Origin: Auanema rhodensis
Lineage: Eukaryota > Animalia > Nematoda
Reading direction: 5' to 3'
DNA: 64,000 nt
Assembly: GCA_964057225.1 (NCBI GenBank)
Contig: CAXKVF010000097.1
Coordinates: 1-64,000 of the forward strand
Below the pieces are notes generated by a model, which saw only the letters and a program-made list of their open reading frames with translations, made no database searches and was not told where the DNA came from. The position numbers were made by a program, and so were the translations under genes. Positions 712 through 23,929 of this stretch are shown here, piece after piece (positions within the stretch are counted from its first letter, which is position 1; each line of letters opens with the position of its first letter).

Positions 712-3600
712 AGCTGTAAATAGTTGTGAACATATTGGCGTAAAAATGGCAGACAAATGGCATAGGAATAGCTTAAAAATGGCAGAAGAATTGGCAAAAA
801 AATGGCAAAGAATTGGCAGGATGTAAGTAGCTCTAAACATATTGGCATAAAAATGGCAAATAGATGGCATAGAAATGGCATAAAAATGGCAGAAGAATGG
901 CAGAAAAATGGCAGAAAAATGGCAGAAAGTTGGCAAAAAAATGGCAAAAAAATGGCAAAGAATTGGCAGACTGTAAATAGTTGTGAACATATTGGCGTAA
1001 AAATGGCAGATAAATGGCAGAGAATTGGCAGGCTGTAAATAGTTGTGAACATATTGGCATAAAAATGGCAGATAAATGGCATAGAAATGGCATAAAAATG
1101 GCATAGAAATGGCATAAAAATGGCAGAAGAATGGCATAAAAATGGCAGAAAAATGGCAGAAAGTTGGCAAAAAAATGGCAAAGAAATGGCAAAGAATTGG
1201 CAGGATGTAAATAGTTATGAACAAAATGGCGTAAAAATGGCAGACAAATGGCATAGAAATGGCTTAAAAATGGCAGATATATGGCATAGAAATGGCATAA
1301 AAATGGCAGAAGAATGGCATAAAAATGGCAGAAAAATGGCAGAAAGTTGGCAAAAAAATGGCAAAGAAATGGCAAAGAATTGGCAGGATGTAAATAGTTA
1401 TGAACATAATGGCGTAAAAATGGCAGACAAATAGCATAGAAATGGCTTAAAAATGGCAGATATATGGCATAGAAATGGCATAAAAATAGCAGAAGAATGG
1501 CATAAAAATGACAGAAAAATGGCAGAAAGTTGGCAAAAAAATGGCAAAGAAATAGCAGAGAATTGGCAGGCTGTAAAAAGTTGTGAACATATTGGCATAA
1601 AAATGGCAGATAAATAGCATAGAAATGGCATAAAAATGGCAGAAGAATGGCATAAAAATGGCAGAAAAATAGCAGAAAGTTGGCAAAAAAATAGCAAAGA
1701 AATGGCAAAGAATTGGCAGACTGTAAATAGTTGTGAACATATTGCCGTAAAAATGGCAGATAAATGGCAGAGAATTGGCAGGCTGTAAATAGTTGTGAAC
1801 ATATTGGCATAAAAATGGCAGATTAATGACATAGAAATGGCATAAAAATGGCATAGAAATAGCATAAAAATGGCAGAAGAATGGCATAAAAATGGCAGAA
1901 AAATGGCAAAAAAATGGCAAAGAATTGGCAGGCTGTAAATAGTTGTGAACATATTGGCGTAAAAATGGCAGATAAATGGCATAGAAATGGCATAAAAATG
2001 GCAGAAGAATGGGCAAAAAAATGGCAAAAAATGGCAAAGAATTGGCAGGATGTGAGTAGCTCTAAACATATTGGCATAAAAATGGCAAATAGATGGCATA
2101 GAAATGGCATAAAAATGGCAGAAGAATGGCAGAAAAATTGCAGAAAAATGGCAGAAAGTTGGCAAAAAAATGGCAAAAAAATGGCAAAGAATTGGCAGGC
2201 TGTAAATAGTTGTGAACATATTGGCGTAAAAATGGCAGATAAATGGCATAGAAATGGCATAAAAATGGCAGAAGAATTGGCAAAAAAATGGCAAAAAATG
2301 GCAAAGAATTGGCAGGATGTAAGTAGCTCTAAACATATTGGCATAAAAATGGCAAATAGATGGCATAGAAATGGCATAAAAAAGGCAGAAGAATGGCAGA
2401 AAAATGGCAGAAAAATGGCAGAAAGTTGGCAAAAAAATGGCAAAGAAATGGCAAAGAATTGGCAGACTGTAAATAGTTGTGAACATATTGGCGTAAAAAT
2501 GGCAGATAAATGGCAGAGAATTGGCAGGCTGTAAATAGTTTTGAACATATTGGCATAAAAATGGCAGATAAATGGCATAGAAATGGCATAAAAATGGCAC
2601 AGAAATGGCATAAAAATGGCAGAAGAATGGCATAAAAATGGCAGAAAAATGGCAGAAAGTTGGCAAAAAAATGGCAAAGAAATGGCAAAGAATTGGCAGG
2701 ATGTAAATAGTTATGAACATAATGGCGTAAAAATGGCAGACAAATGGCATAGAAATGGCTTAAAAATGGCAGATAAATGGCATAGAAATGGCATAAAAAT
2801 GGCAGAAGAATGGCATAAAAATGGCAGAAAAATGGCAGAAAGTTAGCAAAAAAATGGCAAAGAAATGGCAAAGAATTGGCAGGATGTAAATAGTTATGAA
2901 CATAATGGCGTAAAAATGGCAGACAAATGGCATAGAAATGGCTTAAAAATGGCAGATATATGGCATAGAAATGGCATAAAAATGGCAGAAAAATGGCATA
3001 AAAATGGCAGAAAAATGGCAGAAAGTTGGCAAAAAAATGGCAAAGAAATAGCAGAGAATTGGCAGGCTGTAAAAAGTTGTGAACATATTGGCATAAAAAT
3101 GGCAGATAAATGGCATAGAAATGGCATAAAAATGGCAGAAGAATGGCATAAAAATGGCAGAAAAATGGCAGAAAGTTAGCAAAAAAATGGCAAAGAAATG
3201 GCAAAGAATTGGCAGGATGTAAATAGTTATGAACATAATGGCGTAAAAATGGCAGATCAATGGCATAGAAATGGCATAAAAATGGCATAGAAATGGCAGA
3301 AAAATGGCATAAAAATGGCAGAAAAATGGCAGAAAGTTGGCAAAAAAATGGCAAAGAAATAGCAGAGAATTGGCAGGCTGTAAAAAGTTGTGAACATATT
3401 GGCATAAAAATGGCAGATAAATGGCATAGAAATGGCATAAAAATGGCAGAAGAATGGCATAAAAATGGCAGAAAAATGGCAGAGAAATGGCAAAAAGTTG
3501 GCAAAAAAATGGCAAAAAAATGGCAAAGAATTGGCAGGCTGTAAATAGTTTTAAACATAATGGCATAAAAATGGCAGATGAATGGCAGAAAAATGGCAAA
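712..3600. repeat. Complex minisatellite: 11-bp core (AAAAATGGCAG/AGAAATGGCAT) interspersed with a ~35-bp GAATTGGCAGGCTGTAAATAGTTGTGAACATATTGGC module
   Basis: Direct inspection. The many overlapping low-complexity ORFs here are artefacts of the repeat. Confidence 0.95.
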
Positions 3601-3986
3601 AATATCGTATAAAAATTACATAAGCAGAGATGTAGCAGAGATGTAGTAGCATAAACATAAGTTTGGCAAAGAAATGAAGAACTGAAGAAAAAATTCATGG
3701 AAGAATTTCTTCCATCAGCGAAAGTTTTGAAAATATTTTCAAATGGAATTAGATTTCATACCAAATTGGAGTACTCGAGCCTACGTTTTGAGAACGTTGA
3801 ACACTCCTTTTCGGATGTAGTGTAATTGAAAAATAGTTGAATTTCAACTACTTGTAAAATTTTCTTTTGATATTCGTTCTCTGTAAACTCTGAAGTAATG
3901 CTGTACGCGCCTTGTTAAAAGACCTATAAAATGAAGGCCATTTAAAATTTTATTGTAGATAGTTGCAGTAATGCTGAAGTAACTTA

Positions 3987-5217
3987 TTACTTCAATAAAA
4001 TTGAAAACAGCAAAAATGTACAAACATATATATTTAATTCAAAGAACACATGAAATTCTATAGATAGTACAATCATTACAGAAAATTTTTCTCTTATTGT
4101 ACGAGAAGATGATAAAGTAGCAAAAAGAACAGGTTTATCCTTTTTCCATCCATCAAAATATGCTTTTCGCCATTTTCTTTCATCTCCATAGCTAACATAG
4201 AACAAGTATTCTCTTCCTTTTCTGAAACGGAAATGTTTAATAAAGTTATATCTCTAAACATTTCACATCAGATCTTGGTTTAATCTTTTTAATAGTGGAA
4301 TTGTCATTCCACAGCTAGGACAAGTGAAAACTTCTTTTTTTCTACTTTTTTTTTGCATTGGTTCTTTTCGATCATCATCATTGAATGATTGAATATTGTA
4401 CAGTTGTTTAAATCCTCTTTTTAGTGATGATTTTGAACATGTTTCATTTTTCTGTAAATTGATTTAGTTAGTTGGATTTTTTGAAAAAATGTTTACCTTC
4501 TGTTCAGACATTCTTACGACCAATTGCTGGAAAAAAAGCAGAATGAAGTCATTTAGCTTATTCTGGAATAAATATAAACCTGTGTTTATGACTTAAGTTA
4601 GTTTATACCGTTTTATCTATGGTTTCTGAAAGGAACAGCTCGTCTTCTAAGAAAGCAAATATTATGTTGTTGTTTTTTTTAAAACAAGGACAATCGCATA
4701 TAGTTTCCAAAACAATCTGTAAAAATTTCAATTATTTTTCAATCGTTTGAGATACACTCACCCACAACAATAAAATTTCTCTTATATCAATTGGAAGTTT
4801 TTTCAACGTTTCATAAAATGTGAGAAGATTGATTTTTTCTTCATTGGAGAGAAATGGGTTACAAACAATGTCTTTCTGCAAATGATTCCAGAATGAATAG
4901 TAGAATTAAGTTCTGAATTAAATTTTTTTCTCACCTTCACTATGTACATTTTCATCAAAATATCAGGTAGTTCTTTAAAGTTTTGAAGAACTTCTTTATG
5001 TATACTGCCGTATCTTAAAAGTATAGAGCTACAAGGAACAATAGCTAAATTGTCTCCATCATTCCATTGCAATAACTTGCTTATTCTGTCGAAGCTATTT
5101 TTCTGTGTTAATGCCTAATTTTGAAAAAAAATTTCTGAATATAATTTGAACAGAACCCACATATCGATCTTCCATGTTTTTAAATACTCTCAAAGTAGGA
5201 CAAACAGCAGACATCAT
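3987..5217 (-). CDS. Spliced gene of unknown function, 'family A' (CxxC plus YVS..RKW..A..DG motif, possibly Tudor/SH3-like); 3' end uncertain
   Basis: Manual GT-AG splicing gives MMSAVCPTLRVFKNMEDRY|ALTQKNSFDRISKLLQWNDG...MYIVK|KDIVCNPFLSNEEKINLLTFYETLKKLPIDIREILLLW|IVLETICDCPCFKK...IDKT|NKLNDF...EQK|KNETC...FTCPSCGMTIPLLKRLNQDLI|KGREYLFYVSYGDERKWRKAYFDGW... It is homologous to the gene at 29973-30927. Confidence 0.6.
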
Positions 5218-6233
5218 CTGGCAGCGGTAAGAAAATCTGTCAAAAGCTGAAACTGAACAATACAAATTAACTCACAGATTTTAAGTTACGGATACCAAAT
5301 AAGAGCTGAACAAAACAGAATACATTGTCATATTAACAACACGGGATAAAATAATAAAACAAAGTTTTTCAAATAACAAAATTCTTATATGAACAGTAAG
5401 AGTGTTTGAACAACTCAAAATTTTTTAATCTTTTTTTTGATTATGCTAAACGCAATAATAATAAATGAATATCATGTCACTTATCGGCAAAACTTGTTGA
5501 TTGTCATAGAATTTTTATGTAAGTGACTTTTCGATCTGAACAATTTTCTCAAAAGCTAATAGATCGATAATTATTTAAAATTATTTATGATTCAAAACAG
5601 CAGTGCAATCAATTAATGGAAGATTTTTCCCAATCGAAAGTTCATTTAATTACATTAATTGGTGGAAGAGTTTCTTTCATGAAAAGCCTTTTTTCAAAAA
5701 TGGTCTTTCTCATTTAGGAAAACCAAATATTCATAACTGGAATTTTGCTTGTATACATTCGTAAAAAATATCCATTCGTAAAGTTTTAAATAATAAATGA
5801 AATGCAAATATGAAAACAGAAATTGTTGTAGCGAATATAAAACATAAATTATGGAAAAGCAAATATTAAAAATTTATAAATATCCAGTTGTTTTCATCTT
5901 TAATCAACAAAATCTACAAACAGAAAATATTCTGGAAACTAAAAAAGATTGCTATAAGCAGAGTTGTGGCGGCATACATCAAATACTCTCATATTAAAAT
6001 GAGACATGTGTCAGAAACAAATGCATGATACACTTGGGGTGCAATTGATTCTTTTGAAGCGTTTGCGTACATGCATTATAAATTAATAAACTTGACAATT
6101 TTACAATCTATTTACAATTTTCCATAAATCATTATCTTAACAGACATTTCAATAAATGGTATAAAAGAGAAAATTCCAAAGCCAAAGAAAAAAAAATTAA
6201 AACAAACCACATTGCTCTCATTTTTTCCACAAC

Positions 6234-8262
6234 ATGGAATATACAGGACGCTTCATAAATGGAGTTTCTCAAGCTGCTCAATATGATTTTCTAGATCGGG
6301 CAGCGGACAAAGATGCTGAATATGTATCACATTCTGTGAGTTTTAAAACATTTTTACGCATAGGTTTCTACAATTTTAGACTGAATTCAATAATACAATT
6401 GTTGGTACTGAACAATTTTTCGAAACTTCAATTGAGGAAAATGTTGCAGAGGAATTAGAGGAAAACCCATCAAACCAAAAAGTAAGCATTGTGTTCAAGA
6501 AATTTAAAATGTAAAAACTTTGTTTTCAGATGAATGAAATCGCATTATATCACGAACAGAAAAATAAAAATATTTCAGAAAAACTTATGTTGCAAAATCA
6601 AGACAGTAGTTATAGGATTGATGAAATGAAAATTGTTTGCAGAAATGCAATTACCAGCTTTTTCGCTGATAGAATTTCAGCAAATGGCGAATCGGCACCA
6701 ACCCACTCAGGAATCAACAACTATAATATTGTAGAAGTTGTAGAGGAAGAAGATTATTCGGAGAAACTAATCGAAAACGAACAATTTATGGATTATGACA
6801 ATTCGAACAATGTCGACTGGTTAAACGCACCAATCAAAACAATTATTAAAGAGGTGAAACATTTAGGCTTGATATTTAAAACTTTTTCTGTAGATAAACG
6901 CCACGAAGGAACCGTCAAATTTCGATGTGATGATAAGTGTTTTCTGTTTAATTCAGTTCACAACAACACTACAAATGAACAGGTTTGGAAAATGGTTAAA
7001 ATTCTGTTTTTCAGAACAACAATGTGACCATGTTGTGAACGTCAAGTCGTTCAAAATACGGGCAATTGAATGCGGTTCTCCCAAAAATTGCGATAATACA
7101 GTACATGTAAGTTATCACAATCTTTTCCTGAATGCTTATCCATTTTTCTATTTCCAGATAATTTTGCATTTTGAATCTATCACAAAAAGAAAAGTGATAT
7201 CCTCGTTTTTCAATCATCTCGTGAATGTGAACAAAAATGAAGAAGAAACAATGATCAAACTGACACCCATTCAGTGTCAAAGAGAACTTCAAAGAATGAG
7301 AAAACTAATGGCGGAAGATGTCATCAGCTATCAAGGTTTTTTAATTTCAAAAATATTACTGATTAACAAAAATATGAAACATTTTAGGAACTGTAATAAA
7401 CGACATATCTCTTCATTATCTCTATATAATGGAAAACGAAATACAAAAAAACAGCTGGAAGTTGACGGTAAGTAATAAGTTTTTCGAGCAATATTATTTT
7501 TTTTAGAACTGCATGGAATTGCGTTATGATGTAGCTATGCGGCATCAATCACAATTAAAACACTTAATATCCCTCGTTGACGATGCTGAATGTGATAGAA
7601 AGGATGTACGAGTATATATACTCTACGGAGATTCTGGAGCAGGCAAATCTTATTTTGCTAAGAAGTATCTCGGTATGAATTTTTTAAATTAATTTTCAAA
7701 TTTGAAAGAACTATTTCAGAAAAAGTTGCCGGCTCTGTGTATACAACATCTGCTGATTGTACTAGTTATTTTGAAAGTGAGTTTCAACTTTGTTCCGATA
7801 AAAAAAATAATTTATAGAATATAACAAGCAAAATGGAATTATAATTGATGAAGTTGAACAGTTCGGACAACGTGGGTACATGACAGGAAAACAGCTCTTA
7901 ATGATGTGTAATGATGGTACCTGCAGGTAAGTGTTGAACACAAAAATAGTATTACTAAACCCATTTTTTCAGATTGAACGTTAAATTTTCAAGTTGTGTC
8001 ATAAAAGCCCATCATATCTTTCTTATTTCGAACATAGAACCTTCGCAATGGTTTGGGAATGATCATATAACAGTGAGTTCCCGAAAAGGTTAAAAATTAC
8101 ATTTGGTTTCAGTTGACAGCGTTCATGAGACGAATACATTGGATTGGCAAAGCAACCGAATTGAAATCTCAACCGAAATGGAGGAGAGGAAAAGCATTTG
8201 AAACAGTCTTGAAAATTAATCCTAATTATATAATAGATGTCCCTTTTGTGGAATTAAACTGA
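6234..8262 (+). CDS. Intron-containing CRESS-DNA-virus (circovirus-like) Rep homologue: degenerate HUH domain plus SF3 helicase
   Basis: 11 exons (6234-6335, 6380-6481, 6530-6853, 6894-7106, 7158-7335, 7388-7467, 7507-7672, 7720-7776, 7818-7926, 7973-8072, 8113-8262) splice in frame through GT..AG introns of 39-52 nt. Motifs: Walker A VYILYGDSGAGKS; YFEKYNKQNGIIIDE (compare WWDGY..VVIDD, Walker B); LLMMCN...LNVK (motif B'); IFLISN..PSQWF (motif C); AFMRRI (arginine finger). The exon 3/4 boundary is the least certain. Confidence 0.85.
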
Positions 8263-8589
8263 GATTAGAATTATTTTGTTTTTTTTCTTACAGTGATCAG
8301 TTATTAACATTTCATTCTTTTCATAAAAATGATCTCAATATTATCATTCAGGTTCAAATTTTTCTCGCAAATTTGTAGAATAAATTTTTTTCATATTCGC
8401 TTTCGAGCTGTACACACCTAGTATGAAAACAATTGAATTTATAAAAAAAAATATATTTTGAACTAATTTAGATGAAAAATTGTTTGGTTGTATCAAAAGT
8501 AGAAGAATTTCTTCCATTTACAAAAAAAACGTGAAAGTTTCTTCCATAATTATTTTTTGTTCTCATCACGATATAGGTAAACAAACAAT

Positions 8590-8890
8590 GATATATATGA
8601 ACAATTAAATAAATTACCTAATTTTTTCTAGAGCAATAACAATTAATTAAAAATGAATACTATGGAAGAAATTCTTCCACCGTTATGTATGAACAATTAA
8701 TTCAATCTCAAACTTTTTTTTGGTAGTTAAAACAATTACTTGAAGATAAATACAATGGAAAAAATTTTTCCACGGTTATGTATAAACCATTGAATATATC
8801 ACATAATTCTTCTTTGGCAGTTAAGACAATTGATTGAAAATAAATACTTTTAATTTTTTTTGCTGTTATGTATTAATAATTGAATATATC
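8590..8890. repeat. About 3 degenerate ~93-bp tandem repeats, two carrying the TGGAAGAAnTTCTTCCA-type palindrome
   Basis: TATG(T)ATGAACAATT...ACAATT...AATAC...TGGAA recurs with a ~93-bp period downstream of the Rep gene. Confidence 0.7.
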
Positions 8891-9678
8891 AAATTGGAGA
8901 GAAGACACCTGAGATCTGACGTTGATTATCACGGCCATATTTCATGTTTCATCGCGGAAGAAATTCTTCCATCTGAAAATGTAGATTAAAAAAAATGTTG
9001 TGCAGCAGAAATTTGTGATTATTTCAAGAAAATTATTTGAAAACTAAAGAAAGCAGAATTTATAAATATTGGAGAAATTCTTCCATAATTTCCATGATTC
9101 TTGTTTCATCATATACTATATTCAGTTTTCTCGAAAAAGATAAAAAGAAAATTCTACCTATATAAAAAGGTAAATGATTTGTTTTCTAATTTACTTTGAC
9201 TATATATACACATGTTTATATGTGAGATTTGTTCTAACTAGTTCATGTATACAAACCCAATCTTTTTTCAAAGATGTCCTTTTTACATTTTTTCAACAAA
9301 TAAAAATGATTAGCTGTTTTTCATCAATATCAATTTTAAATTCATAGTTATTGCTTTACAAAAAATTATATTTAGGTTTTTCTAAATAAAGGTGAAAATC
9401 AATTTCTTCGATCAACTTATTTTTGAAAACCTTTTGCTTCTGGCATAGTATTCAAAAAATACTGACATCATTGTCAGCCGATAGCAAAATGTTAACTTAC
9501 TAGCATCATAAATGCAATAAACTATCCAATCTTTTACCGCTTTGCCACCCTGGGCTATAAGAATTTGATAGTCAGAGTATATATAAATAGACATAATTCT
9601 TTTTTTCTTGTATTTTTTTTAGTCTGACATTAATTACTTTGTTATTTGGATATTTTCCAGATTTAAATATCCGTAATC

Positions 9679-10667
9679 ATGTCAATGATTAGTACCAACA
9701 TTGAAAAGAAAACTGCTACTACGTATAAACATACTCTACTTTCCGCGGAACAAATAAATACAGAACTTGATTCATTTGAGTTTCAGAATGAAAATTTGGA
9801 TATTCTTCCAAATGGTCAGGTTTTTAAAAAATAATTTTTTTATGTTATCAAATTGTTTTCAGATTTACAAATTGTTGATATAATCGAGTTTCAAGGATTG
9901 CGATGTTCAACACCTTTGAGCGAAAGAAAGTTACCAAGTGTCGATAAGTTCATCTTAAAAGGTACAAACGTGTAATGAATAACAAATTTTTTTATCAAAT
10001 TTTCAGAAGAACCATTAGACGTTTCTGATATTCCATGTAAAAAAATTGGAAAAGGTTTGATCAATGTAAAAGTGTCTGTCAATTTATATTTTTCAGTTGT
10101 AGCTGTTTCTCATAAGCCTCATGAAGTTCAAAATGGCTGTTCCATTGAGGAAATAAAAAAAAAGAAGAAGTTCAGGAGATGTTATTACTGAGTGCAAATG
10201 TGAAATTGCACATCTTAAAAATAGGGCTATTTCGAAAATTGCTAGTAAGAATTTTAAACATATTCAAATCTCAATAAAATGTCTATTTTTAGAAAATTTT
10301 CAACTGATTGACGAAAGGCAAATCATTCCTGAATACTGCACAATTGGTTGCAAAATTTTGGTGTATCATAAAATAACACGCTCCTGGCGCCTAGCCATTA
10401 TTGAAGATATTTCGGATGTCTATAGTAGCATAAAATATTCGCTGATGACAGTGAGTTTTGTTTTGTTTCCCAAATTTTGAGTATTGTTATTTTCAGATCG
10501 ATGACGTGCAAGATAAAATGATTGCAAAAAAATATCATTTTTTGTTCGCGAAAACAAGACTTGTGGGAAAAGAAAAAAATTGGCCAAAGCACATGTATAG
10601 ATTAGTATGCGATGATATTTCCGAGCCACATCTCTACTTGATTCAATCATTAAAAGATCTTGCTTGA
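9679..10667 (+). CDS. Spliced gene 'family B' (CxC plus Tudor-like segment plus PKH..L.C.D motif), copy 1; frameshifted at an A9 homopolymer
   Basis: ATG lies downstream of a TTTTCCAG acceptor. Six exons give MSMISTNIEKK...VITECKCEIAHLK...CKILVYHKITRSWRLAIIEDI...KNWPKHMYRLVCDDISEPHLYLIQSLKDLA*. The A-run is 9 here versus 11 in the intact copies. Confidence 0.6.
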
Positions 10668-11316
10668 ATATATGTAACCTTTTTCATATATTCTCATTTT
10701 TAAATTTTACTCGTTTTTACATTTTTCATGCCATCCATCAATCCTCATTTTGTGATAAAAAATAAAAAGTTTTACGATCGATTTGAGTATTTTTCTACAT
10801 ATCAGAGCATATTGAAATTGTGTTCAATCATTAAAACAAGTTTAGTTCAGTCTTATGAAACGTTTTATATTTTATAAAAAAAACATATTTTAACAATTGA
10901 ATTGTTGTTCATTGATACCTGTTAAAATGCTCAACCTTTTGCCTGTTTTGTTTTGTTACAACTAACAAATTTATTAAAAAAAATACCACAACCCAATCAA
11001 TCTTAGAAGTTCAATAAAATATAAAAAAATATAAAAATATTTTAAACATATTTTGAACCAATTCTATATGTAAAAAGCAGTTGTCTATTTGTTAAAATAT
11101 TCTAAATTAGTGAAAGAACTTCTTCCATTCACAAGAAACTTAAATTGGTGTGAGAGTTTGTTTCATAATTTTTTTTGCGGAAATCAAGATATAGGTTTTT
11201 TTAAATATCAATTTACAATTCATTTCCTATGCGTCTATTTTCAGATGAACTATTTTGAATATTTTATTCAATTATATTAGCTTAATTAATTTACAAATTA
11301 TACAATCCTTTTACAG

Positions 11317-11570
11317 CTACCTCATTGGAAAATGGAACAAGGTAAAAATTGGCCCCGCTGGGGCATCAGGACTAGGACTTTTTGCTGCAAGTGATATAGA
11401 GGTCAGGGGGTTAAGAAGCTCAATAAATATTACATATTCAGGCTGGAAGTTACATATGCGGATACGAGGTGTTGCCAACAAAAAAAAAAGAAGGGTGTTA
11501 TATAGTTAATAAAGGAGGAACCTGGGATGCTGAGAAGTTCAAGAAGCTTTACGAAAAAGTATATTTATGA
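11317..11570 (+). pseudogene. N-terminal SET-domain fragment (truncated histone-lysine-methyltransferase-like), copy 1
   Basis: Two exons (intron 11402-11441) give KVKIGPAGASGLGLFAASDIE|AGSYICGYEVL...GCYIVNKGGTWDA, matching the SET GxGLFAxxxIxxGxxIxxY and Y...DA motifs. It ends before the RFINHSC motif. Confidence 0.7.
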
Positions 11571-11659
11571 CTATTATATATATGACTATTATATAGACGA
11601 CTATTATATATACGACTATTATACTATCCCCCTGATCTTCCTTCTCCAAATTCCCCTGA

Positions 11660-13081
11660 TCTTCCTCCTCCCCGCTCTCCTCTCTCGACCTCTGGTCCAA
11701 CCTCTCTCTCCCCTCCGGTAACGGCAGCGCATTCTCTCTGCCGCGCGCCTATCGTGCTAGCCTGACGGCCTCTGTTGAGCTGTCCGGCCAGCGCCGCTCG
11801 TGGGGCTCCGAGCTCTACCAACAGGTAGAGCTCTCACCCACGGCGGATTCGAGTCCTCCTCCCGGCCTTCTCCCCCCTGCCCCGGTCCTCCCCCAAAACA
11901 GTTCCGGAGTCAAATTGTGGCAGTCTGTCGCCCGTGGTGGACTTGTCCCCCTTGACCCCGTCCCTTTTGACTTCCGCGGGGTCGTGCGAGTGCTTGGGTG
12001 CACTATAGCCCGAGTCTCCTCCGTAGGTGACGGGTTCGAGCTCGCTCCCCCCCCCGGCGGCGAGCGCCTCACCCATATCAGCACCCTCGTGGCGCCGATT
12101 TCCGACTCCAACCGGCTGATTGCGGTCCCCCGTATCTGGGCCGGCACCCCGTCTGTGCCTGCCACGGCTTTCTCCGTCCTGTACAGGGCAGCTCAGGTTG
12201 CTGGGTCCGGTGTGGTTACCAACAGCCTGGTGGGTGAGCCCGGACGCGGTGGGGCGGGCGACGTCCAGCTCGTCCTGCCATACCCCCGCGGCGCCGAGCT
12301 CGCCAATGCCTGCGTCCACGCCCTGAACTACCTCGCGGCCCATTACGAAGCCGCCGAGGCCCCCTCCCACTTTCTGGTGGCCCTCTGGATGGGCCTAACC
12401 GACCACGTACGTCCCGGTAATCCGTATGGCGACAGTGGAGGTGTGTGCAGTTTGGCCGGTAGAGGTGCCTCTTACCCCCCCGGCTTCGGTTACCTGTCAC
12501 CGGAAGTCGTGCCCTCGACGGCCCTGCCACTCCTCCCACGGGGCGCCTCTCTAGCCCAGGTTGTCCACTGGGTCGACAGCCTAGTCCTCACGCTAGGGGC
12601 GATTGTCTCATCCGTCCCCCCATCAACGGTTAACAAGGGGCGGCTGTACGACGCCGTGTGTGTAGCCCCCGGCGCTAGCCAGTTGGATGACGACGAGGCA
12701 GGGCTCAATGACGCAGCCCGGTGGGATGTCCGTCTGGCCGCCAGCGGGCCCATCGACGCCCTCTGCGGCAGGGTGGTACGCTCTTGGTGCCGGTGCCTTG
12801 GGTTCAAGGCCGAGAGCTCCGGCGCCACCCACCTCGGCTCGGCGGTCCACCACCTATTGGCCGCCGAGGACCTGCTCCCGGCCGGGCCCGAAAACGAGGT
12901 CTGGTTCCCCTGGTTGGAAAACGAGCCGACGGGCCTGGTCGACCCCGACTGGTGCTCCCCAGAAGTTTCTGCCCCCCTCGGCGGACCCGTGTGCCCGCCT
13001 CAGTGTCGGAGCTCAGCCGCCAGCACCCCCCCCCCCGTTAAGCCTAAGCTCGATATGCCTAAGCCTGAGTATGATAGTTAA
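11660..13081 (+). mobile_element. Endogenous viral element: toti/victorivirus-like dsRNA-virus capsid gene (N-terminal ~460 aa), copy 1, uninterrupted frame without ATG
   Basis: Abrupt GC-rich island with a stop-free frame of 473 codons. Recognisable victorivirus-type coat blocks: RAYRASLTASV...LYQQV; FSVLYRAAQVAGSGVVTN; GAELANACVHALNYLAAHYEAAEAPSHFLVALWMGL; DSGG...YPPGFG; LPLLP...WVDSLVLTLGAIVSSVPP...GRLYDAV. Confidence 0.8.
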
Positions 13082-13508
13082 GCCTAAGCTCGATATGCCT
13101 AAGCCTGAGTATGATAGTTAAGCCTAAGCCTAAGCCTAAGCCTAAGCCTAAGCCTAAGCCTAAGCCTAAGCCTGAAAAACTCGCAGATATCATCAACCAA
13201 CTGGATGAGAATGAGTTCAATAATTTTCAGGAAATTATTAATACCAGAAGGTTTAACAATGCTATAGGTTTGAAATCAAAAAACATTTTATGCTTAATAA
13301 AACTTTTTTTAGGACTTGAAACAGTCTCCCAGTTCCGAGGCATAAATTTAGAAGTTATCAATGACTTGGTAGCAGATACTAATGAAGAAGGTAAAATATT
13401 TTCAATTATAATAAACTTGTCATTTTTTAAGCTTTTGAGACAGATTTAATTGATACAATTGAAGAACTTTCCGGTATAAAAGCGGAAAAAAAGGATGAGA
13501 CATATTGA
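13037..13508 (+). pseudogene. 40-bp telomere-like duplication plus (AAGCCT)9 tract running in frame (KP repeats) into a spliced 3' gene fragment, copy 1
   Basis: KPKP..PEKLADIINQLDENEFNNFQEIINTRRFNNAI|GLETVSQFRGINLEVINDLVADTNEE|DLIDTIEELSGIKAEKKDETY* through two GT-AG introns. The stop codon coincides with the unit junction. Confidence 0.6.
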
Positions 13509-14124
13509 TAAATATTGGAGAAATTCTTCCATAATTTCCATGATTCTTGTTTCATCATATACTATATTCAGTTTTCTCGAAAAAGATAAAAAGAAAATTC
13601 TACCTATATAAAAAGGTAAATGATTTGTTTTCTAATTTACTTTGACTATATATACACATGTTTATATGTGAGATTTGTTCTAACTAGTTCATGTATACAA
13701 ACCCAATCTTTTTTCAAAGATGTCCTTTTTACATTTTTTCAACAAAGAAAAATGATTAGCTGTTTTTCATCAATATCAATTTTAAATTCATAGTTATTGC
13801 TTTACAAAAAATTATATTTAGGTTTTTCTAAATAAAGGTGAAAATCAATTTCTTCGATCAACTTATTTTTGAAAACCTTTTGCTTCTGGCATAGTATTCA
13901 AAAAATACTGACATCATTGTCAGCCGATAGCAAAATGTTAACTTACTAGCATCATAAATGCAATAAACTATCCAATCTTTTACCGCTTTGCCACCCTGGG
14001 CTATAAGAATTTGATAGTCAGAGTATATATAAATAGACATAATTCTTTTTTTCTTGTATTTTTTTTAGTCTGACATTAATTACTTTGTTATTTGGATATT
14101 TTCCAGATTTAAATATCCGTAATC

Positions 14125-15115
14125 ATGTCAATGATTAGTACCAACATTGAAAAGAAAACTGCTACTACGTATAAACATACTCTACTTTCCGCGGAACAAA
14201 TAAATACAGAACTTGATTCATTTGAGTTTCAGAATGAAAATTTGGATATTCTTCCAAATGGTCAGGTTTTTAAAAAATAATTTTTTTATGTTATCAAATT
14301 GTTTTCAGATTTACAAATTGTTGATATAATCGAGTTTCAAGGATTGCGATGTTCAACACCTTTGAGCGAAAGAAAGTTACCAAGTGTCGATAAGTTCATC
14401 TTAAAAGGTACAAACGTGTAATGAATAACAAATTTTTTTATCAAATTTTCAGAAGAACCATTAGACGTTTCTGATATTCCATGTAAAAAAATTGGAAAAG
14501 GTTTGATCAATGTAAAAGTGTCTGTCAATTTATATTTTTCAGTTGTAGCTGTTTCTCATAAGCCTCATGAAGTTCAAAATGGCTGTTCCATTGAGGAAAT
14601 AAAAAAAAAAAGAAGAAGTTCAGGAGATGTTATTACTGAGTGCAAATGTGAAATTGCACATCTTAAAAATAGGGCTATTTCGAAAATTGCTAGTAAGAAT
14701 TTTAAACATATTCAAATCTCAATAAAATGTCTATTTTTAGAAAATTTTCAACTGATTGACGAAAGGCAAATCATTCCTGAATACTGCGCAATTGGTTGCA
14801 AAATTTTGGTGTATCATAAAATAACACGCTCCTGGCGCCTAGCCATTATTGAAGATATTTCGGATGTCTATAGTAGCATAAAATATTCGCTGATGACAGT
14901 GAGTTTTGTTTTGTTTCCCAAATTTTGAGTATTGTTATTTTCAGATCGATGACGTGCAAGATAAAATGATTGCAAAAAAATATCATTTTTTGTTCGCGAA
15001 AACAAGACTTGTGGGAAAAGAAAAAAATTGGCCAAAGCACATGTATAGATTAGTATGCGATGATATTTCCGAGCCACATCTCTACTTGATTCAATCATTA
15101 AAAGATCTTGCTTGA
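14125..15115 (+). CDS. Family B gene, copy 2 (frame intact)
   Basis: Same as copy 1, with an A11 run that keeps the frame. Confidence 0.65.
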
Positions 15116-15764
15116 ATATATGTAACCTTTTTCATATATTCTCATTTTTAAATTTTACTCGTTTTTACATTTTTCATGCCATCCATCAATCCTCATTTTG
15201 TGATAAAAAATAAAAAGTTTTACGATCGATTTGAGTATTTTTCTACATATCAGAGCATATTGAAATTGTGTTCAATCATTAAAACAAGTTTAGTTCAGTC
15301 TTATGAAACGTTTTATATTTTATAAAAAAAACATATTTTAACAATTGAATTGTTGTTCATTGATACCTGTTAAAATGCTCAACCTTTTGCCTGTTTTGTT
15401 TTGTTACAACTAACAAATTTATTAAAAAAAATACCACAACCCAATCAATCTTAGAAGTTCAATAAAATATAAAAAAATATAAAAATATTTTAAACATATT
15501 TTGAACCAATTCTATATGTAAAAAGCAGTTGTCTATTTGTTAAAATATTCTAAATTAGTGAAAGAACTTCTTCCATTCACAAGAAACTTAAATTGGTGTG
15601 AGAGTTTGTTTCATAATTTTTTTTGCGGAAATCAAGATATAGGTTTTTTTAAATATCAATTTACAATTCATTTCCTATGCGTCTATTTTCAGATGAACTA
15701 TTTTGAATATTTTATTCAATTATATTAGCTTAATTAATTTACAAATTATACAATCCTTTTACAG

Positions 15765-16018
15765 CTACCTCATTGGAAAATGGAACAAGGTAAAAATTGG
15801 CCCCGCTGGGGCATCAGGACTAGGACTTTTTGCTGCAAGTGATATAGAGGTCAGGGGGTTAAGAAGCTCAATAAATATTACATATTCAGGCTGGAAGTTA
15901 CATATGCGGATACGAGGTGTTGCCAACAAAAAAAAAAGAAGGGTGTTATATAGTTAATAAAGGAGGAACCTGGGATGCTGAGAAGTTCAAGAAGCTTTAC
16001 GAAAAAGTATATTTATGA
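15765..16018 (+). pseudogene. SET-domain fragment, copy 2
   Basis: Same sequence as 11317-11570. Confidence 0.7.
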
Positions 16019-16083
16019 CTATTATATATATGACTATTATATAGACGACTATTATATATACGACTATTATACTATCCCCCTGA

Positions 16084-17507
16084 TCTTCCTCCTCCCCGCT
16101 CTCCTCTCTCGACCTCTGGTCCAACCTCTCTCTCCCCTCCGGTAACGGCAGCGCATTCTCTCTGCCGCGCGCCTATCGTGCTAGCCTGACGGCCTCTGTT
16201 GAGCTGTCCGGCCAGCGCCGCTCGTGGGGCTCCGAGCTCTACCAACAGGTAGAGCTCTCACCCACGGCGGATTCGAGTCCTCCTCCCGGCCTTCTCCCCC
16301 CTGCCCCGGTCCTCCCCCAAAACAGTTCCGGAGTCAAATTGTGGCAGTCTGTCGCCCGTGGTGGACTTGTCCCCCTTGACCCCGTCCCTTTTGACTTCCG
16401 CGGGGTCGTGCGAGTGCTTGGGTGCACTATAGCCCGAGTCTCCTCCGTAGGTGACGGGTTCGAGCTCGCTCCCCCCCCCCCGGCGGCGAGCGCCTCACCC
16501 ATATCAGCACCCTCGTGGCGCCGATTTCCGACTCCAACCGGCTGATTGCGGTCCCCCGTATCTGGGCCGGCACCCCGTCTGTGCCTGCCACGGCTTTCTC
16601 CGTCCTGTACAGGGCAGCTCAGGTTGCTGGGTCCGGTGTGGTTACCAACAGCCTGGTGGGTGAGCCCGGACGCGGTGGGGCGGGCGACGTCCAGCTCGTC
16701 CTGCCATACCCCCGCGGCGCCGAGCTCGCCAATGCCTGCGTCCACGCCCTGAACTACCTCGCGGCCCATTACGAAGCCGCCGAGGCCCCCTCCCACTTTC
16801 TGGTGGCCCTCTGGATGGGCCTAACCGACCACGTACGTCCCGGTAATCCGTATGGCGACAGTGGAGGTGTGTGCAGTTTGGCCGGTAGAGGTGCCTCTTA
16901 CCCCCCCGGCTTCGGTTACCTGTCACCGGAAGTCGTGCCCTCGACGGCCCTGCCACTCCTCCCACGGGGCGCCTCTCTAGCCCAGGTTGTCCACTGGGTC
17001 GACAGCCTAGTCCTCACGCTAGGGGCGATTGTCTCATCCGTCCCCCCATCAACGGTTAACAAGGGGCGGCTGTACGACGCCGTGTGTGTAGCCCCCGGCG
17101 CTAGCCAGTTGGATGACGACGAGGCAGGGCTCAATGACGCAGCCCGGTGGGATGTCCGTCTGGCCGCCAGCGGGCCCATCGACGCCCTCTGCGGCAGGGT
17201 GGTACGCTCTTGGTGCCGGTGCCTTGGGTTCAAGGCCGAGAGCTCCGGCGCCACCCACCTCGGCTCGGCGGTCCACCACCTATTGGCCGCCGAGGACCTG
17301 CTCCCGGCCGGGCCCGAAAACGAGGTCTGGTTCCCCTGGTTGGAAAACGAGCCGACGGGCCTGGTCGACCCCGACTGGTGCTCCCCAGAAGTTTCTGCCC
17401 CCCTCGGCGGACCCGTGTGCCCGCCTCAGTGTCGGAGCTCAGCCGCCAGCACCCCCCCCCCCGTTAAGCCTAAGCTCGATATGCCTAAGCCTGAGTATGA
17501 TAGTTAA
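16084..17507 (+). mobile_element. Toti/victorivirus-like capsid EVE, copy 2 (frameshift at C11 run)
   Basis: Same as copy 1 except the poly-C run near 16471 is 11 instead of 9. Confidence 0.8.
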
Positions 17508-17916
17508 GCCTAAGCTCGATATGCCTAAGCCTGAGTATGATAGTTAAGCCTAAGCCTAAGCCTAAGCCTAAGCCTAAGCCTGAAAAACTCGCAGATATCA
17601 TCAACCAACTGGATGAGAATGAGTTCAATAATTTTCAGGAAATTATTAATACCAGAAGGTTTAACAATGCTATAGGTTTGAAATCAAAAAACATTTTATG
17701 CTTAATAAAACTTTTTTTAGGACTTGAAACAGTCTCCCAGTTCCGAGGCATAAATTTAGAAGTTATCAATGACTTGGTAGCAGATACTAATGAAGAAGGT
17801 AAAATATTTTCAATTATAATAAACTTGTCATTTTTTAAGCTTTTGAGACAGATTTAATTGATACAATTGAAGAACTTTCCGGTATAAAAGCGGAAAAAAA
17901 GGATGAGACATATTGA
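17463..17916 (+). pseudogene. Telomeric tract (AAGCCT)6 plus KP-repeat gene fragment, copy 2
   Basis: As 13037-13508, with three fewer telomeric units. Confidence 0.6.
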
Positions 17917-18532
17917 TAAATATTGGAGAAATTCTTCCATAATTTCCATGATTCTTGTTTCATCATATACTATATTCAGTTTTCTCGAAAAAGATAAAAA
18001 GAAAATTCTACCTATATAAAAAGGTAAATGATTTGTTTTCTAATTTACTTTGACTATATATACACATGTTTATATGTGAGATTTGTTCTAACTAGTTCAT
18101 GTATACAAACCCAATCTTTTTTCAAAGATGTCCTTTTTACATTTTTTCAACAAAGAAAAATGATTAGCTGTTTTTCATCAATATCAATTTTAAATTCATA
18201 GTTATTGCTTTACAAAAAATTATATTTAGGTTTTTCTAAATAAAGGTGAAAATCAATTTCTTCGATCAACTTATTTTTGAAAACCTTTTGCTTCTGGCAT
18301 AGTATTCAAAAAATACTGACATCATTGTCAGCCGATAGCAAAATGTTAACTTACTAGCATCATAAATGCAATAAACTATCCAATCTTTTACCGCTTTGCC
18401 ACCCTGGGCTATAAGAATTTGATAGTCAGAGTATATATAAATAGACATAATTCTTTTTTTCTTGTATTTTTTTTAGTCTGACATTAATTACTTCGTTATT
18501 TGGATATTTTCCAGATTTAAATATCCGTAATC

Positions 18533-19523
18533 ATGTCAATGATTAGTACCAACATTGAAAAGAAAACTGCTACTACGTATAAACATACTCTACTTTCCGC
18601 GGAACAAATAAATACAGAACTTGATTCATTTGAGTTTCAGAATGAAAATTTGGATATTCTTCCAAATGGTCAGGTTTTTAAAAAATAATTTTTTTATGTT
18701 ATCAAATTGTTTTCAGATTTACAAATTGTTGATATAATCGAGTTTCAAGGATTGCGATGTTCAACACCTTTGAGCGAAAGAAAGTTACCAAGTGTCGATA
18801 AGTTCATCTTAAAAGGTACAAACGTGTAATGAATAACAAATTTTTTTATCAAATTTTCAGAAGAACCATTAGACGTTTCTGATATTCCATGTAAAAAAAT
18901 TGGAAAAGGTTTGATCAATGTAAAAGTGTCTGTCAATTTATATTTTTCAGTTGTAGCTGTTTCTCATAAGCCTCATGAAGTTCAAAATGGCTGTTCCATT
19001 GAGGAAATAAAAAAAAAAAGAAGAAGTTCAGGAGATGTTATTACTGAGTGCAAATGTGAAATTGCACATCTTAAAAATAGGGCTATTTCGAAAATTGCTA
19101 GTAAGAATTTTAAACATATTCAAATCTCAATAAAATGTCTATTTTTAGAAAATTTTCAACTGATTGACGAAAGGCAAATCATTCCTGAATACTGCGCAAT
19201 TGGTTGCAAAATTTTGGTGTATCATAAAATAACACGCTCCTGGCGCCTAGCCATTATTGAAGATATTTCGGATGTCTATAGTAGCATAAAATATTCGCTG
19301 ATGACAGTGAGTTTTGTTTTGTTTCCCAAATTTTGAGTATTGTTATTTTCAGATCGATGACGTGCAAGATAAAATGATTGCAAAAAAATATCATTTTTTG
19401 TTCGCGAAAACAAGACTTGTGGGAAAAGAAAAAAATTGGCCAAAGCACATGTATAGATTAGTATGCGATGATATTTCCGAGCCACATCTCTACTTGATTC
19501 AATCATTAAAAGATCTTGCTTGA
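18533..19523 (+). CDS. Family B gene, copy 3 (frame intact)
   Basis: Same as copy 2. Confidence 0.65.
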
Positions 19524-20172
19524 ATATATGTAACCTTTTTCATATATTCTCATTTTTAAATTTTACTCGTTTTTACATTTTTCATGCCATCCATCAATCC
19601 TCATTTTGTGATAAAAAATAAAAAGTTTTACGATCGATTTGAGTATTTTTCTACATATCAGAGCATATTGAAATTGTGTTCAATCATTAAAACAAGTTTA
19701 GTTCAGTCTTATGAAACGTTTTATATTTTATAAAAAAAACATATTTTAACAATTGAATTGTTGTTCATTGATACCTGTTAAAATGCTCAACCTTTTGCCT
19801 GTTTTGTTTTGTTACAACTAACAAATTTATTAAAAAAAATACCACAACCCAATCAATCTTAGAAGTTCAATAAAATATAAAAAAATATAAAAATATTTTA
19901 AACATATTTTGAACCAATTCTATATGTAAAAAGCAGTTGTCTATTTGTTAAAATATTCTAAATTAGTGAAAGAACTTCTTCCATTCACAAGAAACTTAAA
20001 TTGGTGTGAGAGTTTGTTTCATAATTTTTTTTGCGGAAATCAAGATATAGGTTTTTTTAAATATCAATTTACAATTCATTTCCTATGCGTCTATTTTCAG
20101 ATGAACTATTTTGAATATTTTATTCAATTATATTAGCTTAATTAATTTACAAATTATACAATCCTTTTACAG

Positions 20173-20426
20173 CTACCTCATTGGAAAATGGAACAAGGTA
20201 AAAATTGGCCCCGCTGGGGCATCAGGACTAGGACTTTTTGCTGCAAGTGATATAGAGGTCAGGGGGTTAAGAAGCTCAATAAATATTACATATTCAGGCT
20301 GGAAGTTACATATGCGGATACGAGGTGTTGCCAACAAAAAAAAAAGAAGGGTGTTATATAGTTAATAAAGGAGGAACCTGGGATGCTGAGAAGTTCAAGA
20401 AGCTTTACGAAAAAGTATATTTATGA
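20173..20426 (+). pseudogene. SET-domain fragment, copy 3
   Basis: Same sequence as 11317-11570. Confidence 0.7.
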
Positions 20427-20491
20427 CTATTATATATATGACTATTATATAGACGACTATTATATATACGACTATTATACTATCCCCCTGA

Positions 20492-21914
20492 TCTTCCTCC
20501 TCCCCGCTCTCCTCTCTCGACCTCTGGTCCAACCTCTCTCTCCCCTCCGGTAACGGCAGCGCATTCTCTCTGCCGCGCGCCTATCGTGCTAGCCTGACGG
20601 CCTCTGTTGAGCTGTCCGGCCAGCGCCGCTCGTGGGGCTCCGAGCTCTACCAACAGGTAGAGCTCTCACCCACGGCGGATTCGAGTCCTCCTCCCGGCCT
20701 TCTCCCCCCTGCCCCGGTCCTCCCCCAAAACAGTTCCGGAGTCAAATTGTGGCAGTCTGTCGCCCGTGGTGGACTTGTCCCCCTTGACCCCGTCCCTTTT
20801 GACTTCCGCGGGGTCGTGCGAGTGCTTGGGTGCACTATAGCCCGAGTCTCCTCCGTAGGTGACGGGTTCGAGCTCGCTCCCCCCCCCCGGCGGCGAGCGC
20901 CTCACCCATATCAGCACCCTCGTGGCGCCGATTTCCGACTCCAACCGGCTGATTGCGGTCCCCCGTATCTGGGCCGGCACCCCGTCTGTGCCTGCCACGG
21001 CTTTCTCCGTCCTGTACAGGGCAGCTCAGGTTGCTGGGTCCGGTGTGGTTACCAACAGCCTGGTGGGTGAGCCCGGACGCGGTGGGGCGGGCGACGTCCA
21101 GCTCGTCCTGCCATACCCCCGCGGCGCCGAGCTCGCCAATGCCTGCGTCCACGCCCTGAACTACCTCGCGGCCCATTACGAAGCCGCCGAGGCCCCCTCC
21201 CACTTTCTGGTGGCCCTCTGGATGGGCCTAACCGACCACGTACGTCCCGGTAATCCGTATGGCGACAGTGGAGGTGTGTGCAGTTTGGCCGGTAGAGGTG
21301 CCTCTTACCCCCCCGGCTTCGGTTACCTGTCACCGGAAGTCGTGCCCTCGACGGCCCTGCCACTCCTCCCACGGGGCGCCTCTCTAGCCCAGGTTGTCCA
21401 CTGGGTCGACAGCCTAGTCCTCACGCTAGGGGCGATTGTCTCATCCGTCCCCCCATCAACGGTTAACAAGGGGCGGCTGTACGACGCCGTGTGTGTAGCC
21501 CCCGGCGCTAGCCAGTTGGATGACGACGAGGCAGGGCTCAATGACGCAGCCCGGTGGGATGTCCGTCTGGCCGCCAGCGGGCCCATCGACGCCCTCTGCG
21601 GCAGGGTGGTACGCTCTTGGTGCCGGTGCCTTGGGTTCAAGGCCGAGAGCTCCGGCGCCACCCACCTCGGCTCGGCGGTCCACCACCTATTGGCCGCCGA
21701 GGACCTGCTCCCGGCCGGGCCCGAAAACGAGGTCTGGTTCCCCTGGTTGGAAAACGAGCCGACGGGCCTGGTCGACCCCGACTGGTGCTCCCCAGAAGTT
21801 TCTGCCCCCCTCGGCGGACCCGTGTGCCCGCCTCAGTGTCGGAGCTCAGCCGCCAGCACCCCCCCCCCCGTTAAGCCTAAGCTCGATATGCCTAAGCCTG
21901 AGTATGATAGTTAA
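20492..21914 (+). mobile_element. Toti/victorivirus-like capsid EVE, copy 3 (frameshift at C10 run)
   Basis: Same as copy 1 except the poly-C run near 20879 is 10. Confidence 0.8.
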
Positions 21915-22323
21915 GCCTAAGCTCGATATGCCTAAGCCTGAGTATGATAGTTAAGCCTAAGCCTAAGCCTAAGCCTAAGCCTAAGCCTGAAAAACTCGCA
22001 GATATCATCAACCAACTGGATGAGAATGAGTTCAATAATTTTCAGGAAATTATTAATACCAGAAGGTTTAACAATGCTATAGGTTTGAAATCAAAAAACA
22101 TTTTATGCTTAATAAAACTTTTTTTAGGACTTGAAACAGTCTCCCAGTTCCGAGGCATAAATTTAGAAGTTATCAATGACTTGGTAGCAGATACTAATGA
22201 AGAAGGTAAAATATTTTCAATTATAATAAACTTGTCATTTTTTAAGCTTTTGAGACAGATTTAATTGATACAATTGAAGAACTTTCCGGTATAAAAGCGG
22301 AAAAAAAGGATGAGACATATTGA
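21870..22323 (+). pseudogene. Telomeric tract (AAGCCT)6 plus KP-repeat gene fragment, copy 3
   Basis: As copy 2. Confidence 0.6.
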
Positions 22324-22939
22324 TAAATATTGGAGAAATTCTTCCATAATTTCCATGATTCTTGTTTCATCATATACTATATTCAGTTTTCTCGAAAAAG
22401 ATAAAAAGAAAATTCTACCTATATAAAAAGGTAAATGATTTGTTTTCTAATTTACTTTGACTATATATACACATGTTTATATGTGAGATTTGTTCTAACT
22501 AGTTCATGTATACAAACCCAATCTTTTTTCAAAGATGTCCTTTTTACATTTTTTCAACAAATAAAAATGATTAGCTGTTTTTCATCAATATCAATTTTAA
22601 ATTCATAGTTATTGCTTTACAAAAAATTATATTTAGGTTTTTCTAAATAAAGGTGAAAATCAATTTCTTCGATCAACTTATTTTTGAAAACCTTTTGCTT
22701 CTGGCATAGTATTCAAAAAATACTGACATCATTGTCAGCCGATAGCAAAATGTTAACTTACTAGCATCATAAATGCAATAAACTATCCAATCTTTTACCG
22801 CTTTGCCACCCTGGGCTATAAGAATTTGATAGTCAGAGTATATATAAATAGACATAATTCTTTTTTTCTTGTATTTTTTTTAGTCTGACATTAATTACTT
22901 CGTTATTTGGATATTTTCCAGATTTAAATATCCGTAATC

Positions 22940-23929
22940 ATGTCAATGATTAGTACCAACATTGAAAAGAAAACTGCTACTACGTATAAACATACTCTAC
23001 TTTCCGCGGAACAAATAAATACAGAACTTGATTCATTTGAGTTTCAGAATGAAAATTTGGATATTCTTCCAAATGGTCAGGTTTTTAAAAAATAATTTTT
23101 TTATGTTATCAAATTGTTTTCAGATTTACAAATTGTTGATATAATCGAGTTTCAAGGATTGCGATGTTCAACACCTTTGAGCGAAAGAAAGTTACCAAGT
23201 GTCGATAAGTTCATCTTAAAAGGTACAAACGTGTAATGAATAACAAATTTTTTTATCAAATTTTCAGAAGAACCATTAGACGTTTCTGATATTCCATGTA
23301 AAAAAATTGGAAAAGGTTTGATCAATGTAAAAGTGTCTGTCAATTTATATTTTTCAGTTGTAGCTGTTTCTCATAAGCCTCATGAAGTTCAAAATGGCTG
23401 TTCCATTGAGGAAATAAAAAAAAAAGAAGAAGTTCAGGAGATGTTATTACTGAGTGCAAATGTGAAATTGCACATCTTAAAAATAGGGCTATTTCGAAAA
23501 TTGCTAGTAAGAATTTTAAACATATTCAAATCTCAATAAAATGTCTATTTTTAGAAAATTTTCAACTGATTGACGAAAGGCAAATCATTCCTGAATACTG
23601 CGCAATTGGTTGCAAAATTTTGGTGTATCATAAAATAACACGCTCCTGGCGCCTAGCCATTATTGAAGATATTTCGGATGTCTATAGTAGCATAAAATAT
23701 TCGCTGATGACAGTGAGTTTTGTTTTGTTTCCCAAATTTTGAGTATTGTTATTTTCAGATCGATGACGTGCAAGATAAAATGATTGCAAAAAAATATCAT
23801 TTTTTGTTCGCGAAAACAAGACTTGTGGGAAAAGAAAAAAATTGGCCAAAGCACATGTATAGATTAGTATGCGATGATATTTCCGAGCCACATCTCTACT
23901 TGATTCAATCATTAAAAGATCTTGCTTGA
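22940..23929 (+). CDS. Family B gene, copy 4 (frameshift at A10 run)
   Basis: Same as the other copies apart from homopolymer length. Confidence 0.55.

Follow-up and report, generated by a model that had tools for sequence, protein, structure and literature searches.

A predicted gene of the nematode Auanema rhodensis with host-style introns and a helicase core of the CRESS-virus Rep type

The stretch of DNA analysed here (the window) comprises 64,000 nucleotides of Auanema rhodensis, positions 1 to 64,000 of contig CAXKVF010000097.1, and carries on its forward strand, between positions 6234 and 8262, a predicted gene that ends in a helicase of viral type. As judged from its sequence, this is probably a single-copy, host-style nematode gene whose last five exons stem from the superfamily 3 (SF3) helicase core, or S3H core, of the Rep protein of a CRESS virus, a virus whose single-stranded DNA is circular and encodes Rep; the HUH endonuclease half of that Rep would have been lost and the remainder exapted. 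The homology of the core to viral Reps, its domain limits, the open frame of the gene and its key motif residues are established by the comparisons described below. The DNA of the window is nematode-nuclear-like, with about 30 % guanine plus cytosine (GC), short introns, TTAGGC-type telomere repeats and large satellites, and Rfam identified no RNA gene over the window at gathering thresholds.

The features of the gene are as follows. Residue numbers refer to the spliced protein, and non-seed residues are those outside the ten seed residues of the motif pattern with which the viral relatives were selected.

6234..8262, + strand: whole gene, ATG to TGA, 500 codons when spliced, unbroken
6234..7467, + strand: exons 1-7, encoding the N-terminal ~307 residues
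6234-6335, 6380-6481 and 6530-6853, + strand: exons 1-3, splice model
6894-6936, 7015-7106, 7158-7335 and 7388-7467, + strand: exons 4-7, splice model
7507..7672, + strand: exon 8, start of the viral Rep match, with Walker A
7627..7650, + strand: Walker A GDSGAGKS, residues 348-355
7720..7776, + strand: exon 9, variable part linking Walker A and Walker B; tblastn and profile alignments run colinearly through its junctions
7818..7926, + strand: exon 10, with Walker B; seen by tblastn, profile alignment and six-frame search
7838..7852, + strand: Walker B IIIDE, residues 389-393
7973..8072, + strand: exon 11, with the conserved lysine K422 and motif C; six-frame match of the exon alone at an expectation value (E) of 7.8e-7
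7983..7985, + strand: Lys422, non-seed residue; 99 % of viral Reps have lysine in this column
8025..8051, + strand: motif C and its context ISN..P..W, residues 436-444
8113..8262, + strand: exon 12, with the arginine pair, followed by a tail of 40 residues without a match and by the stop codon
8119..8136, + strand: AFMRRI, residues 454-459; R457 and R458 lie in columns that are arginine in 96-97 % of viral Reps; non-seed residues
8379..8384, + strand: AATAAA, a possible polyadenylation signal 117 nt 3' of the stop codon

The helicase core and its viral relatives

Viral relatives were collected with a degenerate DNA pattern built from the protein's own motifs and their spacing (G-K-S, D-[DE] and S-N-x-x-P-x-x-W-[FY]), which was scanned in IMG/VR. 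At least 120 stretches matched, against about a dozen estimated by chance. An over-strict version of the pattern gave no matches, and a second, stricter one (all codons, extra query residues) gave 20, every one of them in a contig of 1.9-5.7 kb. Among the matches listed, which number 120 loci, 113 are shorter than 6 kb, with a median of 2855 bp, and 109 hold the motifs in frame and free of stops; the open reading frames (ORFs) have a median length of 268 amino acids (aa), and none exceeds 428. The 11 listed loci without an in-frame, stop-free match include all five loci longer than 11 kb, and their number agrees with the chance estimate. Pfam recognized RNA_helicase in all of the ten best-matching viral ORFs and Viral_Rep in eight of these, while ten ORFs sampled at regular intervals from the list returned Viral_Rep nine times and RNA_helicase eight times.

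A tblastn comparison of the spliced protein with these motif-selected loci returned 40 loci at E<1e-3 (best 7.7e-15), with alignments that cover 116-160 residues at 25-33 % identity and run colinearly across exons 8-12. On profiles of 25 and 74 viral Reps the protein scores 78.1 and 83.8 bits, respectively; these unmasked scores are inflated because the comparators were selected by motif, and the fair figures are the 35.8 and 32.7 bits obtained when the ten seed residues are masked (X), to be set against the highest scores of 17.2 and 19.0 bits among 2000 shuffles that keep the seed, for each profile in turn. The match spans residues 307-460 of the protein and positions 119-262 of the 267 in the profile. 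Piece by piece, the signal amounts to 21.5 bits from Walker A to Walker B and 16.5 bits from Walker B to motif C, and falls to 6.9 bits past motif C; the part that precedes Walker A contributes 1.2 bits, a value equalled by 24 of 1000 shuffles and not convincing. Exon 8 alone is matched by the Rep profile in a six-frame search at E 1.1e-5. The profile score, its controls and the syntax of the motifs agree in supporting the assignment of residues of about 347-460 (exons 8-12) to an SF3 helicase core of the CRESS-virus Rep type, as the C-terminal part of the protein had been read in the original prediction, which was made from the letters alone.

That prediction had also quoted the motifs GDSGAGKS, IIIDE, ISN..P..W and AFMRRI, and all four were found where it had placed them. 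The first of these conforms to the Walker A pattern G-x-x-G-x-G-K-[ST], and its residues G348, G351, G353, K354 and S355 fall in columns shared by 72-100 % of the 74 viral Reps. Walker B lies 36 residues past S355, where about 35-45 are expected, and S437-N438 of motif C lie 43 residues past E393, where about 40-45 are expected, and are followed by P441 and W444. The lysine between Walker B and motif C and the arginine pair past motif C, both features of S3H domains of the CRESS Rep type, are present as well. Family knowledge would make Lys422 the B'/beta-hairpin lysine and R457/R458 a putative arginine finger. The predicted protein thus contains the residues for ATP binding and hydrolysis, the conserved lysine and the arginine pair. 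In 50 columns, 70 % or more of the 74 viral Reps share a residue, and the protein retains that residue in 20 of these; the conserved residues kept outside the seed number 11 (G348, G351, A358, Y370, Y383, L409, K422, I433, A454, R457 and R458).

The searches of Pfam and of solved structures with the nematode gene were made exon by exon, using ten exon translations for Pfam. Here exon 8 alone was assigned to generic P-loop families only. Of the two Pfam families anticipated in the original prediction, RNA_helicase (PF00910) was touched at its positions 2-17 with 13.2 bits (E 0.13), below the cut-off of 21.5 bits, and Viral_Rep did not appear in these piece-wise searches. Solved-structure searches with exons 8, 10, 11 and 12 singly gave nothing useful, and a homologous-protein search with exon 8 gave no fragment-sized homologue. 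Using phmmer against 1.84 billion representatives, exon 8 returned only two spurious matches, a fish NLR and a repeat protein, and in viral and metagenome contigs it found only P-loop look-alikes, namely a kinase-like ORF and a clamp-loader-like ORF. The generic Pfam families and the two phmmer matches are what an ordinary cellular P-loop or AAA+ gene without viral ancestry might yield. We nevertheless find such an ancestry scarcely credible: none of the generic P-loop proteins compared exceeds 13.3 bits on the Rep profile (the fish NLR, the kinase-like ORF, the clamp-loader-like ORF and 150 decoy ORFs), compared with 83.8 bits for the nematode protein, and the match of the latter extends from Walker A to the arginine pair and includes the 11 conserved residues outside the seed.

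Over the profile columns the protein is 14-27 % identical to viral Reps, which is less than any two sampled viral Reps share, with a median of 22.7 % compared to a median of 37 % between viruses; the nematode protein stands further from the viral Reps than any sampled one of these stands from the others. The core can be described as a long branch, which fits an old capture, a changed constraint, or both. The best-matching environmental genomes are L037 and L143. For L037, the best match, the named relatives belong to Kajamanuvirus (Kanorauviridae, Saturnivirales, Cressdnaviricota), and the nearest solved structure is that of the ‘ATP-dependent helicase Rep’ (PDB code 7lar).

The helicase might instead have come from an RNA virus, as a picorna-like SF3 helicase of the 2C type. 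PF00910 covers both groups, and the tandem array adjacent to the gene carries insertions derived from a double-stranded RNA (dsRNA) virus (a Totivirus_coat match, described below), so that RNA-virus sequences do enter this region. We consider this origin improbable all the same. Among the matches listed, the motif syntax retrieved Rep-sized ORFs in contigs of 2-5 kb and none in a polyprotein; the protein reaches 78-84 bits on the CRESS profile, whereas CRESS Reps themselves obtain only 30-50 bits on the mixed PF00910 model; and no protease or polymerase remnant was seen nearby in searches that used the CRESS profile and ORFs only.

Gene structure, introns and the N-terminal region

The gene model was built with a script that enumerates and scores GT..AG introns and retains only stop-free, in-frame chains; the minimal model, of 12 exons and 11 introns, takes the fewest introns that are necessary and adds two that are optional. 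It leads from an ATG at 6234 to a TGA at 8262 through a predicted spliced frame of 1503 nt, or 500 codons. Frame 0 of the spliced sequence holds a single stop, its last codon, and the splice model involves no frameshift; stops number 44 and 42 in the two remaining frames, and 32-56 per frame in the unspliced locus. When the weakest observed splice score is taken as the threshold, the longest spliced chain at the real locus measures 1686 nt. For 60 first-order Markov random loci of matched composition the mean is 280 nt and the maximum 606 nt, and the opposite strand of the locus yields 207 nt at most. Introns 4 (6937-7014) and 5 (7107-7157) are in frame and stop-free and are therefore optional, possibly being read through, which sets the exon number at 10-12; the 11 exons reported earlier, splicing in frame and without stops, lie within this range. 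The introns are 39-78 nt long, and all 11 are bounded by GT..AG, with GTAAGT-like donors and TTTCAG-like acceptors that resemble those of nematodes. The GC content is 34.8 % in exons, 25.9 % in introns and 25-28 % in the flanks, and within exons GC1 is higher than GC2. Both the intact frame and the host-type gene structure are as they should be in a domesticated viral gene.

Four of the introns lie inside the viral part, at positions where 109 viral relatives read straight through. Junctions 9/10, 10/11 and 11/12 fall in confidently aligned columns of the profile, and junction 8/9 in a variable loop. As the viral relatives are uninterrupted at these positions, capture most probably preceded the gain of the four introns. 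The long nuclear residence that had been proposed from the first inspection is also favoured by the host-like introns and base composition. As probable gains on a sequence with a known intron-less ancestor, the four introns would provide a clean case for the study of intron gain in nematodes.

Several observations weigh against the reading of an exapted viral helicase. The gene structure is a prediction from genomic sequence, and its exons 3-7 are ambiguous, introns 3 and 6 having weak sites for which alternatives exist. The selection of the viral comparators by motif and the generic Pfam assignment of exon 8 have been mentioned. No orthologue or paralogue was found in protein and contig searches with single exons or ORF pieces; as the searches were piece-wise, this absence holds for close relatives, and distant or differently sized ones could escape. 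Because there is thus no orthologue with which to measure purifying selection, that the gene is under selection is something we infer. Finally, 30 of the 50 columns conserved among the viral Reps are altered, several near-invariant ones among them, so that the activity may be altered or lost.

The same alterations, together with the lack of a relative in any protein search, a core more divergent than any sampled viral Rep (a median identity of 22.7 % against 37 % among viruses) and a position among satellites and recently amplified repeats, would suit a neutral relic, that is, a captured helicase that is still open by chance, is unexpressed or non-functional, and is heading to decay. We regard this as unlikely. 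The frame runs through 500 stop-free codons next to two frames with 44 and 42 stops, all 11 introns retain GT..AG and nematode-like acceptors, and the catalytic residues are kept; moreover, the time required for intron gain and for adopting the host's composition should also have broken a neutral frame.

In contrast to the core, the N-terminal region bears no resemblance to a Rep. Its ~307 residues are acidic and rich in Asn, Glu and Ile, and the coding stretch has stop-free runs of 165 and 182 codons in DNA of 30 % GC. Aligned with the endonuclease half of the viral Rep profile, residues 1-307 score -1.4 bits, with no endonuclease signal. The contiguous N-terminal ORFs had no match in Pfam even at E 10, and a homologous-protein search with the ORF of 182 aa found no relative. 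An AlphaFold single-sequence model of the stretch 6894-7334 was uninformative, with a predicted local distance difference test score (pLDDT) of 41, and no fold search was based on it. In the first 33 kb, searched in all six frames, the Rep profile matched only exons 8, 11 and, weakly, 10, and gave no endonuclease remnant. When 456 ORFs from 130 loci of CRESS size were compared with the same 33 kb, they matched the helicase exons only and no capsid remnant, although this is a weak test because capsids diverge fast. Given the score of residues 1-307, the lack of a Pfam family and the absence of endonuclease and capsid remnants in 33 kb, the name Rep that the original prediction gave to the gene does not apply in its full sense.

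A further proposal made at that stage was that the gene could be the enzyme of an unrecognised class of rolling-circle mobile elements. The helicase is indeed of the kind used by rolling-circle viruses, and a 25-nt inverted pair, 80 % complementary, flanks the gene at 5873-5897 and 8423-8447. However, 48 AT-rich pairs of this kind, the flanking one included, were counted in 8 kb, and inverted repeats around the gene do not exceed what chance gives in AT-rich DNA, where chance hairpins abound. There is no HUH endonuclease in any frame of the first 33 kb, no second copy or paralogue of the gene within the window, and no database relative of the pieces searched. Lacking an HUH domain, the protein cannot nick DNA and hence cannot start rolling-circle replication. 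As a nuclease, a second copy and a convincing terminal structure are all missing, we hold this more exciting reading to be highly improbable and correct it here: nothing in the data supports a new class of rolling-circle elements.

Surroundings of the gene

A neighbouring gene is suggested upstream of the helicase gene, on the - strand, where 7 exons (3848-4955) splice to a chain of 771 nt without stops. The beginning of the window is occupied by a 21-nt array that contains TTAGGC (4-215), by (AT)n (242-626) and by a 2.8-kb array of an 11-nt unit (AAATGGCAGAG; 742-3600) with higher periods of 150-183 nt, in which the long ORFs are repeat artefacts. A palindrome of 17-19 nt (TGGAAGAAATTCTTCCA) occurs seven times within 3696-11127 and is dense at 8498-9085; in part, it falls within a 93-nt repeat (8592-8847) that lies a short way downstream of the helicase gene. 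The palindrome might serve as a site for protein binding, or might be what is left of a small inverted-repeat element.

About 800 bp past the helicase gene starts a tandem array (9058-24481) of about 3.5 copies of a 4.41-kb unit, which are 99.2-100 % identical. Each unit contains an orphan gene, which is AT-rich and has 3 introns, as well as a block of 1.5 kb at 65 % GC. The full copy of the orphan gene (14125-15115) has a product of 283 aa, and Pfam gave no match for the largest exon of this copy. The GC-rich blocks are located at 11611-13110, 16041-17540 and 20451-21950, and their ORFs (11915-13081, 16515-17507 and 20859-21914, + strand, 67 % GC) represent a partial totivirus-like coat protein (Pfam Totivirus_coat, E 1e-15 to 1e-18, positions 100-423 of 759). 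No polymerase was seen. The contrast of the blocks in GC with host DNA of 25-30 % GC and their lack of introns suggest an insertion that is much younger than the helicase gene and was amplified along with its host unit.

Between this array and the telomere-type repeat described next lie a satellite with a unit of 197 nt, present in 13 copies of 94 % identity and at a short second site, as well as arrays of a 10-nt unit, ATTCTAGAAC, at 27386-29983, 24467-24835 and 25461-26218. Positions 32786-32906, well inside the window, hold 20 perfect copies of AGCCTA, the nematode telomere repeat read on the other strand. Directly after these repeats, a 176-nt satellite (33223-64000) continues to the end of the window in 175 copies with 98 % identity. 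Telomere repeat and satellite together may mark a healed or fused chromosome end, or a region that is lost from somatic cells.

Proposed history and comparison with known systems

The history that we propose for the gene would begin with an old capture of a Rep from a CRESS-DNA virus (Cressdnaviricota), only the helicase half of which remains. About 300 residues for which the searches gave no match would have taken the place of the HUH nicking domain. After capture, the viral part would have acquired the base composition of the host and gained at least four spliceosomal introns, and the core would have diverged further from the sampled viral Reps than these have among themselves. Judging from the residues kept and from the family, the protein may still bind and hydrolyse ATP and assemble into a ring as viral S3H domains do. 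With these activities it could move along nucleic acid under the control of the host, the lineage-specific N-terminal region providing the targeting. The gene would thus probably encode an exapted ATPase. A motor domain with its catalytic residues, joined to new sequence and interrupted by host introns, is also the expected look of a viral part that has been turned into a host gene.

A bolder version would have the viral S3H motor rebuilt as a lineage-specific nematode gene, with a new N-terminus and at least four new introns, that performs a host job in a repeat-rich, telomere-repeat-bearing and possibly germline-restricted region. The candidate jobs may include interference with the replication of incoming single-stranded DNA viruses, or DNA processing at chromosome ends. 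We think that this version is rather unlikely in its entirety; if true, it would present four probable intron gains, all of them later than a capture that can be defined as an event.

Among known systems, the S3H domains of CRESS Reps share with the nematode protein the Walker A and Walker B motifs, the lysine, the motif C S-N-x-x-P-x-x-W and the arginine pair, in the same order and with the same spacing. The nematode gene differs from them in that it is nuclear, has four introns in its viral part and lacks the HUH endonuclease, a capsid gene and a small circular genome, and its product carries an unrelated N-terminus of 300 residues. The picorna-like 2C helicases belong to the same superfamily and to the same Pfam family, PF00910. 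Unlike these, the nematode helicase has no polyprotein context, and its motif-C context and profile affinity would favour the Rep branch.

In Helitrons, an HUH Rep is combined with a superfamily 1 (SF1) helicase of the Pif1 type. Their RepHel likewise belongs to a eukaryotic nuclear element tied to rolling-circle replication, but the nematode helicase is of the SF3 type and has no HUH domain, and neither a second copy within the window nor defined termini were found. Rep-derived insertions as such are common, and most of them are whole or decaying Reps.

The closest precedent in nematodes is provided by the circovirus-like Rep insertions, some of them reportedly expressed, that were described in the filarial genera Brugia, Loa, Wuchereria and Onchocerca (Liu et al. 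2011, PMC3198968). They were found by similarity to whole Reps, and the word ‘intron’ is absent from the main text of that report (PMC3198968). Like the gene described here, they are Rep-derived and fixed in nematode nuclear genomes, and their publication softens the claim to novelty with which the helicase gene was first put forward. As far as the published description of the filarial insertions allows the two to be set apart, the Auanema gene consists of the helicase half only, is dense in introns and has no detectable relative. A Rep-derived nematode gene is therefore not new in kind; what sets this one apart is the loss of the nuclease, the fusion to an unrelated N-terminal region, an intron density of 11 over a coding sequence of 1.5 kb, and the isolated position of the gene in sequence.

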